DNA from: Orbicella franksi
Taxonomy: Eukaryota
Assembly: GCA_964199315.1 (NCBI GenBank)
Contig: OZ116710.1
Span: forward strand, 1,488,001-1,552,000
Length of the DNA stretch: 64,000 nt
Reading direction: 5' to 3'
Made by a program: the position numbers and the translations under genes. Shown here piece after piece: positions 8,890-12,346 of the stretch (its first letter is position 1; every line of letters begins with the position of its first letter). A model generated the notes under the pieces. The model was not told the origin of the DNA, did not search any database, and saw only the letters and a list, made by a program, of their open reading frames with translations.

Positions 8890-11800
8890 TCAGACAATTT
8901 TTCTACGCTGACCTCTGTTTCCCGAATCTGTGTTTTTGGCAGGCGACATGAAGTTTGGGAATTTTTTTTTACCCGGGTGAAGATACCTGTTTAGTTTGAC
9001 TTTGAGCCGGGCTAACTGTCTCCGAAGATTGCGTAACTTTGTGGTAGGACTTATTCGTGCGCCGATTGTGTTGTGTCTGTGAGTGCGCGGTGATAACCGA
9101 GCAGTAGGCAGATAAGGTTCTTGTGTTGCCTTGGTAACTGTTTCTTTGAGTACACGCCCAGATACTTTCCGAAGTCCACTTGATGTTCGAAATCTTCCTT
9201 TTGGTATTTTTCTTCTTTCATCTCTTAATGACTTGGTGGAAAGTGATAGACGATTCTTTGATAGTCTGTTTGTTAATTTTGATGACTTTACTAAGTGAAT
9301 AAAGTGCGTGATTCCTTTCTTAAAATGCGAGCTGTTATTTCTTGACCTAGAAACTTCCCATTGCGATAACTTTTTCAAATTGTGTATTTTCTTAGATTTG
9401 TGTTCACTAAACTGGTCATGGCTTATTGGGATTGTGTCATGTCTTTCAAAATCTGGCAAAATTGCCTGGTTTACGTGATGGCTTATTTGGACTTTTCTAT
9501 GTTTGTTTCTTTGACTGAATTGACTTGGTAAAGCAGTATGAGCAAGTACACCAAGTGCACTTGCATTAGAAGTGCTCCCCAATTTTTGGAATGAGTTCTT
9601 TTCCTTGACCCAACTTTTGCGGTGATGTTTCAATATGTGGGAGATTATATCTGAGAGATCGTGGAAGCCTCTACCGTAGCCAACCCCGTCTACTGTGTTC
9701 TGCTTTTCAATGGGTTCCAATGGACGGTGCTGACTGGTTACATTCCAATCACTGACAATGTCAGTTGAAGGAAATGGAATAATTGATGCTTTTCTTTCTT
9801 TGACGACCTGCTTGTCCCCTAAAAACAAAAGTACAAACAAATAAATCGGGTTGAGTGGAAACATGGTCTCAACATAGGACAAATCTCAATTCCTAAGCGG
9901 TCACGCCCCGAGTTCAACCAGTCGGCCTCCCTTGTGACTAACCAATTGGTTTGCCTTGAGCCAGTTAGGGTTTTGTAACTTTGTTATGTTTATTTTAGAT
10001 GATTTGTTTCTGATATATTATACTCAGCCCAACCATCTTTTGTACTATAAAGTCTACTCTTATGTTGATCAAAGGAAACGTTTTTCATATTTCTTCACTT
10101 TCACGGTACTCATAGCAGCCTATTTTCCTAACTTGTTCACGATGCTTGTAACCATGCAAGAAATTTAAACATCGCATCAGCATTCACACCAGGCTTCTCG
10201 CTGGTAACAACAGGAGAGTAGGAGCATAAAAACAAGGGCCGATAGGACCTCCTCCGTAATACAAAATTGACGAATGCAGCTAGCAATGAGGTTATTGTCT
10301 ACACCTACGTTTAAGCATGTCGTTAAGCCATCTGACAGCTTGAAAAGCTCCACCTCCGGAGCCCGCGGTGTAGAAATTAACCGCTATAAAATTTGCCCAT
10401 AATCCAAACTTGTCGTGGCATGTAGTCAGTTTCTCTCTGATTTCCTTATACGAATTCAGGCATGGCTGAAGAGGGTTAGCCGCTGTACTGAACCAGTTTA
10501 CTAGAACCAGGCTCCAGCGGTCATTCCAGACAGCGTTCCAACGGGATTCTGCGCGATCAACACATTTCTTGGGAAAGAAAACCTCAGCGATTACTTGACG
10601 TGATGTATAAGGATGTACAATACAAATGAAACAAACATTTACATAAATTTCAACTGTTATCCTGATAGCTGGTTATCAGTGAAAAAGGAATTATGTTCCT
10701 CTTTGCAGAGACAAATGTTTTCATTCAACTTGTGCGCCTGTTACCTTTGTGAACACAGCAGACATAATATACTCTACCTTCACGTTTTGCCCCGGGCTGC
10801 CATAACGGTTCTCTCTGACGTAATGCCACATATTGGACTCCGTATAAGGAAAACCACTGAGACCATTGTTGTTGAACACCACCAATCGACCCAATCTGCG
10901 CATGTCTCTTAGCGTGGGCCAATCATGGAACCCATCGCCATAACTGTCCTTTAGCAGCACGTAAGGAGAAATTCTCGCTTGGTCAAATACTCGTTTCAGA
11001 ATTGTAGGATTTTTTAAGTAGTCCTCAAAGATGATGGTGATAACTTCATGCCTGTTACTTTCAAGGAATTTCCTGATTTCAATCAGCGTGTCCAGAAGAT
11101 TTGACGAACCACTCCAGAAACAAGAAGCGTGACAGAGACGAACCTCTGCTGCTCCCCACCCTAGAGAGAAGTGAAACTGAGCATATTATTTGAATTGTGG
11201 TTGCGCCTGGGGAGACATTCCAATTTTCACTCCAGTTTGGTGCTGGTCAAGGCCAGAAATGTTGAAAAAATACCGTAAATTTAATCTCACAAAAAGTTAC
11301 AGTACAAAATAAAGTCATTTATCTAGCTTACCTGGGTATATGTCTAACATAAGTCCGCGCGCACCATCCTTGAGCTGCTGACTGACGCTGAATCGTTGAT
11401 TGCGGGCCCATACAGCAAAGTTTGGCGAGTTGGAGAAGGAATTATGGGTAACAAGAAACGCCACTTTGTTGAAGGGCCTGTCATAATCCTAAACAGCAGT
11501 AGCAGTCAATCGATGAGTATATTTTTCTTATCGCTTAAATTCTCTCCTTAGAATGATTAACCTTTTCAACAAACCTAAAAAAGCGCCCATTTCCTAAATC
11601 ATGCCTAAATCAGTCAATGAAACGGCTGAATGCCAAAGATAATGTTTCATTTTTAAGGAAAGGAATATTCTCCAGAGATAACTCTTTACCTGTTCTGTAA
11701 AAGCAGGTACACGTGACATTTGACAGGTGGCATATGGTTTGTCACACAACCTACACACTAGTCCATCAGCGCATGCGTATCCCGCAGAACAGCGCTCATT

Positions 11801-12346
11801 TTCCCTTCTCGGATGATGCAAGCACTTCTGATAGCCCGGTTGGCAGCTTAGACCTGGGGCACAAGAAAATCCCGCAGAACACGGCTCTTCGTATCGACGA
11901 GGATGATGGAAGCAAAGCTGAAAAGAAGTCCAACTATCAGTTAGGCTAAACTAAACAGAAATGGTCGTTTTCAAATTAAGTCAACTGACCTGAACGCCTG
12001 GTTCACAAGAGAGACCACTTCCACAATCATACCCGGCCACGCAGGGCTCACCATGAAGACGAGGCACGTGGAAACATTTCTGAACTCCCGGATGGCAACT
12101 GAATCCACTGGCGCACGGCCTTGTGACATGACAGCGGTCTCCATACACTCCGGGAGCCGCACATTTCTGTACTCCCGCCTCGCAGGTGTTCAAGGGATGG
12201 CAGCGACAGAAAGCGGAACAAATGTCACCAGCCTGCCCCTTGCCGTTGCCATGGGGACAGGAGAAAAACCAAAAACCATCGATGCGAGAACAACAGGTGG
12301 CAACGAAAAACATTAAAACCAAAATCCAGGAATAGGGCAAACACAT
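8890..12346 (-). CDS. Secreted PI-PLC X-domain (PLC-like phosphodiesterase) protein with five N-terminal Cys-rich repeats and a putative basic C-terminal tail
   Basis: Exons 11990-12346 (signal peptide MCLPYSWILVLMFFVATCCS plus repeats), 11690-11917, 11332-11488 (FLVTHNSF...NQRFSVSQQLKDGARGLMLDIY), 10778-11160 (VRLCH, EVITIIFEDY) and 10305-10567 (ANFIAVNFY). Then either read-through to TAA at 10292, or an 11-nt exon 10190-10200 plus last exon 8890-9818. All phases are compatible. Confidence 0.85.

Follow-up and report, generated by a model that had tools for sequence, protein, structure and literature searches.

A gene of five exons on the minus strand of a 64,000-nucleotide stretch of the coral Orbicella franksi (assembly GCA_964199315.1, contig OZ116710.1, positions 1,488,001 to 1,552,000; hereafter the window) encodes, as judged from its sequence, a secreted phospholipase C (PLC)-like phosphodiesterase of the At5g67130/PLCL family (PF26146, PF26178). 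The enzyme class itself is known, and what is new in the anthozoan form is that it has five copies of a small Cys module and has lost the C-terminal anchor region. The best joint explanation of the data, which we regard as probable, is an intact hexacorallian host gene for a secreted, disulfide-rich phosphodiesterase of this family that works by the mechanism proposed below.

The five exons join into an open coding sequence of 1401 nucleotides, corresponding to 466 amino acids and a stop codon, and all four introns have GT/AG borders. The gene runs from position 12346, where the ATG starts, to position 10292, where the stop codon ends, and these limits are identical to those given in an earlier interpretation made from the DNA letters without database searches (the sequence-only reading). 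Directly upstream of the ATG there is a stop codon in frame. The window is AT-rich (GC content 0.33-0.45) and the locus has a composition like that of its surroundings. No second copy of the gene was found within the window, where it is single-copy. The features of the gene are the following, where aa stands for amino acids.

10292..12346, minus strand: whole gene from ATG to stop, by exon join; the same exon set occurs in the orthologous loci L003, L007 and L002
11990..12346, minus strand: exon 1, aa 1-119, with the signal-peptide-like N-terminus, units 1 and 2 and most of unit 3, by exon join
12346-12287, minus strand: signal-peptide-like N-terminus, aa 1-20, by hydrophobicity
12232-12161, minus strand: Cys unit 1, by Cys spacing
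12145-12074, minus strand: Cys unit 2, by Cys spacing
12055-11912, minus strand: Cys unit 3, by Cys spacing; it spans intron 1 and has its last Cys in exon 2
11690..11917, minus strand: exon 2, aa 120-195, with the last Cys of unit 3, units 4 and 5 and the linker, by exon join
11893-11822, minus strand: Cys unit 4, by Cys spacing
11803-11723, minus strand: Cys unit 5, with the spacing of the plant N-terminal module
11722-11690, minus strand: linker between unit 5 and the catalytic domain, in exon 2
11332..11488, minus strand: exon 3, aa 196-248, ending in phase 1, with the start of the catalytic domain, H210, N211, NQ, R239 and D244, by motifs
11446-11444, minus strand: H210 codon, aligning with the first catalytic His of Listeria PI-PLC (PI, phosphatidylinositol) and of rat PLC-delta1
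11344-11342, minus strand: D244 codon, family motif
10778..11160, minus strand: exon 4, aa 248-375, with LCH, the EDY motif, the WP motif and RLVVF, by family motifs
11131-11129, minus strand: H258 codon (LCH), family motif
11026-11024, minus strand: E293 codon (EDY motif), family motif
10292..10567, minus strand: exon 5, aa 376-466 and the stop codon, with C-x2-R-x-ES, LVNWF, ANFIAVNFY and the basic C-terminus, by family motifs

Residues 1-26 are the sole strongly hydrophobic stretch of the protein, with a hydrophobic core at residues 7-19 and small residues at 18-20. No other membrane-span-like segment was found in the 466 residues (no other 19-residue window exceeds 1.6 on the Kyte-Doolittle scale), nor any N-glycosylation sequon or hydrophobic C-terminal tail; the protein has a basic end, 10 residues past the last conserved motif. 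The AlphaFold2 (AF2) model of the exon 1 product consists of a helix at residues 5-19, a disordered stretch and then small beta-rich modules, with a mean predicted local distance difference test score (pLDDT) of 73. The catalytic domain, at about aa 196-456, is reached through a short linker after unit 5. It carries THNS at 209, NQ at 225, RGLMLD at 239, LCH at 256 and ANFIAVNFY at 433, together with IIFEDY (which holds E293), WP, RLVVF, C-x2-R-x-E-S and LVNWF. The sequence-only reading had proposed a signal peptide, Cys units and a PI-PLC X-type domain of the plant or bacterial secreted type with both catalytic histidines. These elements are confirmed, the N-terminus as signal-peptide-like by hydrophobicity and the histidines as H210 and H258, and all of the motifs that it quoted are present.

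The family was assigned by comparison with plant proteins. Residues 186-466 match land-plant At5g67130-like/PLCL proteins in blastp with 37-40% identity over 265-285 aa (E ~1e-50), and the next best named relatives are also plants (Ginkgo, Oryza, Colocasia, Marchantia, Andrographis). Bacterial members of the family show 30-36% identity to the catalytic domain. Precomputed matches to PF26146 (PI-PLC_X) and PF26178 (Rv2075c_cat) are those of orthologous fragments, and the window protein itself was placed by blastp; the literature on Rv2075c gave no function. In an alignment of 86 family sequences, 54 columns are conserved to at least 85%, and the window protein agrees at 48 of them, both histidines included. 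Searches with less material stayed empty: Pfam on the five exon translations gave sub-threshold noise only, the NCBIfam scan gave no match, and phmmer with exon 4 alone found no match in the PDB, where PI-PLC structures were reached by family profiles only. The family profile retrieved Listeria PI-PLC (1AOD/2PLC, E = 5e-7), followed by the Bacillus and S. aureus enzymes. In the Listeria alignment T-H-N falls on T-H-D and C-H on Y-H, so that both histidines are aligned. The AF2 model of the plant-like relative P0014 (mean pLDDT 85, core >95) matched bacterial PI-PLC structures in Foldseek with a probability of 1.0, E = 2e-7 and a template modelling (TM) score of ~0.5; eukaryotic PLC cores came next. 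In both sequence profile and fold, bacterial PI-PLCs are thus remote relatives. The secreted bacterial enzymes (Listeria PlcA 1AOD/2PLC, Bacillus 1PTD, S. aureus 3V16 and the Ca-dependent Pseudomonas enzyme 5FYO) resemble the coral protein in the TIM-barrel fold, as seen through P0014, in the two aligned histidines, and in being exported, single-domain and X-type. However, the identity in structural alignment is ~13-15%, and the bacterial enzymes have no Cys modules.

The active site was compared with two mechanistic types. A deeper family profile aligns with rat PLC-delta1 (1DJG) weakly (E = 0.04) and with its motifs gap-free, in the register H-N on H-N, L-M-L-D on L-E-L-D, C-H on Y-H and L-E on L-E. 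The aligned positions of PLC-delta1 are His311/Asn312, Glu341/Asp343, His356 and Glu390, which we take to be the acid/base pair and the Ca2+ ligands. On this alignment N211, D244 and E293 would occupy three of the four catalytic Ca2+-binding positions. A family Asp aligns with the mutated residue of 1T6M, the R70D mutant of the Bacillus enzyme. The Arg at that position of Bacillus PI-PLC is catalytic, whereas the PLCL family has Asp there, as do metal-dependent PLCs. Because three of the four ligand positions are kept, the mechanism is probably metal-dependent and not Arg-dependent as in Bacillus PI-PLC. Likeness to PLC-delta1 is confined to the X-region motifs; the coral protein has no PH, EF-hand, Y-linker or C2 domains, has Met at the Glu341 position and is predicted to be extracellular, in contrast to the cytosolic rat enzyme. 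Vertebrate PLCXD1-3 are X-domain-only PLC-like proteins of animals and are not known to have a signal peptide or Cys modules; they were never among the matches of the searches made, which included no direct comparison with the coral protein.

In the mechanism that we propose, the N-terminus would direct the protein into the secretory pathway and, without an anchor signal, the protein would be released in soluble form. The TIM-barrel domain would then cleave the glycerol-phosphate ester of a phospholipid head group, with H210 and H258 as the putative acid/base pair. By analogy with the plant enzymes, the substrate may be PI or of the glycosylphosphatidylinositol (GPI) type, possibly also phosphatidylcholine (PC). 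The five Cys modules may form a rigid N-terminal stalk or targeting arm, which would present the enzyme to a membrane, matrix or glycan surface. The models for this activity are AtPLCL1 and RcPLCL1, the only family members with a known phospholipase C activity; in yeast microsomes they hydrolyse PI as well as PC and yield diacylglycerol (PMC6221933). The catalytic domain of the coral protein aligns end to end with plant PLCL proteins and retains nearly all conserved residues. Both kinds of protein have a Cys module with the spacing of unit 5 directly before the domain and an intron at about the same place, the border between module and domain, and the secretory leader of the plant proteins has a counterpart in the signal-peptide-like N-terminus of the coral protein. 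Two of the three catalytic-region introns differ, and the plant proteins have one module, in contrast to five in the coral protein. Furthermore, the plant proteins carry a C-terminal Cys-rich stretch and a hydrophobic tail, whereas the coral protein ends after the barrel. Because this stretch and tail are absent, the coral protein is most likely soluble, either secreted or luminal. At5g67130 itself is listed among the GPI-anchored surface proteins (PMC6726743). The C-terminal GPI-anchor signal, absent from the coral protein, is probably not a family-defining trait.

Orthologous loci were recovered from other anthozoan-type sequences. With exon 4 as the query, 398 matches were obtained at E <= 0.001 among 1.84 billion representative proteins, eight of them at E <= 1e-30. 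All eight are exon-sized fragments from unannotated contigs, except one partial NCBI model from Actinostola (KAK3729580.1). One locus, L001, is 98.9% identical to the window. In the Tara coral-metagenome scaffolds L003-L005 the gene is flanked as it is in the window, by an intronless GH13 amylase gene and a coiled-coil gene on one side and a glutathione synthase gene on the other, and it is also present in L007 and in L002 (Actinostola, GCA_033675265.1). In L003, L007 and L002 the five exons are collinear, with the same borders and intron phases. The L003 and L007 genes join into intact proteins, each 82% identical to the window protein. The Actinostola orthologue (L002, gene at ~3200-8100) has five exons and five modules and one frameshift in exon 4 of the assembly, which may be an artefact of the assembly or a genuine lesion and is the reason why the NCBI model is partial. 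In both L003 and L007 at least 28 of the 29 mature cysteines and all 23 array cysteines are kept, and so is every cysteine in 13 orthologous exon-1 fragments from about ten further relatives. These fragments were the only yield of the exon-1 search, which gave no other protein context for the Cys array. The gene is thus a genuine, intact and conserved host gene of the hexacorallian genome. A divergent homologue at L008:6264-9189 (+) encodes 354 aa, in pieces that are 36-55% identical, and agrees with the window gene in the positions and phases of all three introns of the catalytic region, but its single first exon encodes the leader and only two Cys modules. It adjoins NACHT/LRR, reverse-transcriptase and sulfatase genes.

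The Cys modules start at C43, C72, C102, C132 and C162, with a period of 29-30 aa. They had been described in the sequence-only reading as five 4-Cys repeats of the form C-x5-C-x5-C-x6-C. This spacing is exact in units 2-4, while units 1 and 5 carry extra cysteines: unit 1 combines it with an additional C47 (and C30 further upstream), and unit 5 is C-x5-C-x5-C-x2-C-x6-C. The 4-Cys pattern occurs four times in the array, compared with a maximum of two, and none in 96%, of 20,000 composition-preserving shuffles of 170 residues. The cores of units 1-4 have 10-14 of 23 residues in common, and pairs with unit 5 have 5-10. At the DNA level Tandem Repeats Finder detects no repetition within the array, so the module duplications are old.

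The source of the modules can be sought within the family. Plant members have one Cys module between leader and catalytic domain, C-S-x4-C-x2-G-L-x-C-x2-C-...-C, which is present in 113 of the 119 checked. Unit 5 shares its spacing, its C-S and G-L landmarks and its position before the domain. In hhalign, anthozoan and plant modules match with a probability of 83-90% (P ~1e-6 to 9e-6) and inner and terminal anthozoan units with 95%, values that for short Cys-rich profiles are supportive, not conclusive, with the shared position adding weight. The module number is one in plants, two in L008 and five in the window protein. Because plant proteins carry one such module at the same place, the comparison of sequences indicates that the five-unit array is an amplification of the family's own single module and not a new fusion. 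The earlier suggestion of Dickkopf/colipase-type modules was not sustained: the Pfam likeness (E 0.05-0.71) is below all cut-offs, and Foldseek with the AF2 exon-1 model gave no PDB match at E <= 0.001, so that no fold likeness of the array is significant. Its non-significant neighbours were the IGFBP-N-like spider protein SIBD-1 (E = 0.14), the prokineticin MIT1 (0.54) and colipase (2.9), with knottins weaker. Dickkopf, colipase, MIT1 and SIBD-1 modules are likewise small, Gly/Pro-rich, all-beta and of similar size, but they differ in Cys number and spacing, and the real homologue is the N-terminal module of plant PLCL proteins. A 551-aa family member, P0062, is encoded on a bacterial-type contig (L013:4001-5656, +). 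Its catalytic domain is preceded by two Cys modules, and it carries an additional repeat domain at the C-terminus; among the genes near it are those for an OprB porin, a P-type ATPase and a DUF2092 protein.

Selection on the two parts of the protein was estimated against L003 and L007. In the Cys array the ratio of nonsynonymous to synonymous substitution rates (dN/dS) takes values of 0.066-0.072, and in the catalytic part values of 0.063-0.127 (dS 0.9-1.8), while the leader peptide evolves freely in sequence among the orthologues and conserves its hydrophobicity. Repeat and catalytic exons are collinear and both under purifying selection in several species, in line with the single gene of the sequence-only reading. 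The sequence-only reading had named venom, digestion, mucus defence and symbiosis as candidate effector roles, and one specific form of this idea is a nematocyst venom component or injected toxin, in which the PLC would attack the membranes of prey or predators. Secretion, richness in disulfides and the repeat array would suit that role, toxin-type knots and MIT1 are among the weak structural neighbours of the array, and bacterial PI-PLCs are virulence factors, as the names of the PDB matches indicate. However, purifying selection is strong and uniform, the gene is single-copy in the window and synteny is stable, and because selection is so strong and synteny so stable a fast-evolving toxin family is not indicated. 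In addition, the nearest characterised relatives are housekeeping-type plant surface enzymes, and a literature search for the family in cnidarians, in venom or in the context of horizontal gene transfer found nothing relevant and no paper linking PLCL proteins to cnidarian venom. We consider a venom role quite improbable.

Another view is that of a non-catalytic pseudo-enzyme, whose barrel would only bind a lipid or glycan head group and whose Cys array would be the functional part, for instance as a growth-factor-binding or inhibitor-like module of the IGFBP-N or Dickkopf type. The best array fold neighbour, non-significant as it is, is an IGFBP-N-like protein, and Pfam gives weak hints of Dickkopf and colipase. 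A family Asn is replaced by Ser in the five-module clade, and the position of PLC-delta1 Glu341 is Met. Met is, however, the usual residue of the family at this position, and the plant enzymes of proven activity have it too. Moreover, both histidines and 48 of the 54 conserved columns are kept, N211, D244, E293 and R239 among them, and dN/dS is equally low in the catalytic part and in the array. We therefore consider a pseudo-enzyme very unlikely.

Several points tell against the proposal of a secreted, metal-dependent phosphodiesterase and set its limits. The gene is known here from DNA sequence alone, and the signal peptide was called by hydrophobicity alone. The Asn that is Ser in the five-module orthologues is conserved in 99% of the family alignment. 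The window exons have no match to PF00388, the old PI-PLC-X model, for which an Actinostola fragment (18.6 bits) and plant-like relatives (18.8-20.6 bits) also stay below the cut-off of 23.1. The alignment behind the metal site, that with PLC-delta1 at E = 0.04, is weak, and the fourth Ca ligand position is Met. The fold evidence comes from P0014, which is 37% identical to the window protein, and the substrate is extrapolated from two plant enzymes assayed in crude microsomes.

The origin of the gene was addressed with a neighbour-joining (NJ) tree of 275 columns and 200 bootstraps. The window protein, L003, L007 and L008 form one clade (99%) outside land plants, and this anthozoan clade joins land plants, together with P0062, at 44% support. 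In the intron maps of Marchantia and Ricinus one phase-0 intron falls close to the position of the anthozoan module/domain-border intron, and the other two introns of the anthozoan catalytic region are not common to these plants. Contaminating or recently transferred plant, algal or bacterial DNA might have been suspected, since the best full-length database relatives are all land plants and then bacteria and no annotated full-length animal model was found. However, at least four other anthozoan-type contigs, one of them from a sea-anemone assembly, agree with the gene in the positions and phases of its four spliceosomal introns, and only one of these introns is near a plant intron position. 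Synteny with the neighbours is conserved, the GC content is like that of the rest of the window, and the anthozoan sequences form their own clade outside land plants. Recent transfer or contamination is excluded by introns, synteny and tree, and we give it next to no probability. The data are compatible with both ancient retention and ancient transfer.

The distribution among animals should be read with the composition of the databases in mind. The exon-4 matches among the 1.84 billion representative proteins include no full-length animal model of the family. That collection holds mostly prokaryote-style gene calls on such contigs, and the neighbouring amylase also obtains almost only unnamed matches there; for this reason an absence from other animals is only suggested. 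A profile search of a 5.8-billion-protein collection with a mixed anthozoan and plant alignment returned 2294 matches dominated by plants and gives no view of animals. The sequence-only reading had found the architecture unfamiliar from bilaterians. This stands in so far as no bilaterian match appeared in the searches, but the single-module form belongs to a large annotated plant family. A wider scenario is that, among animals, the plant-type secreted PLC occurs only in anthozoans, as the relic of an ancient eukaryotic gene that other animals have lost or as a very old acquisition between kingdoms, and that module amplification turned it into an extracellular effector stripping GPI-anchored or phosphoinositide head groups from foreign cell surfaces, such as those of algal symbionts, microbes or prey. 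The enzyme would then be a lineage-specific means by which corals interact with microbes or symbionts. We regard this scenario as rather unlikely.

If the preferred reading of a secreted PLCL-family phosphodiesterase is true, corals and sea anemones have a secreted enzyme that, among characterised proteins, is most closely related to plant cell-surface phospholipases and is of a type present in no annotated animal proteome of the searched collections. The protein would then also be a clean case of domain-architecture evolution, in which the family's own mini-module was amplified from one to two to five under strong constraint. Furthermore, it would add one more candidate to the few extracellular lipid- or GPI-cleaving enzymes whose possible sites of action are the coral surface, the gut cavity and the symbiosome.

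Other open reading frames (ORFs) surround the gene in the window. About 400 nucleotides downstream of its stop codon, on the same strand, an ORF of 330 aa rich in Lys, Arg and Ser (8890-9882, minus) has no Pfam match but has counterparts with 33-35% identity in L003 and L007, in the corresponding position there. Most likely this ORF is a gene of its own, so far uncharacterised. The intronless GH13 ORF (22597-24300, plus) encodes an alpha-amylase/alpha-glucosidase of 567 aa (PF00128, E = 1.6e-132). Its identity is 75-99% with sequences on anthozoan-type contigs, 57% with a protein of Nematostella and 46-50% with many alpha-glucosidases of bacteria, and it looks like an old bacterial-type gene resident in Anthozoa. 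The remaining ORFs are ordinary neighbours: a coiled-coil protein with weak KASH_CCD and bZIP-like matches (17630-18307, minus), an exon with a VTT domain of the SNARE-associated/DedA type (32161-32721, plus), and an intronless ORF of 404 aa of the beta-1,3-galactosyltransferase type (54031-55245, plus).

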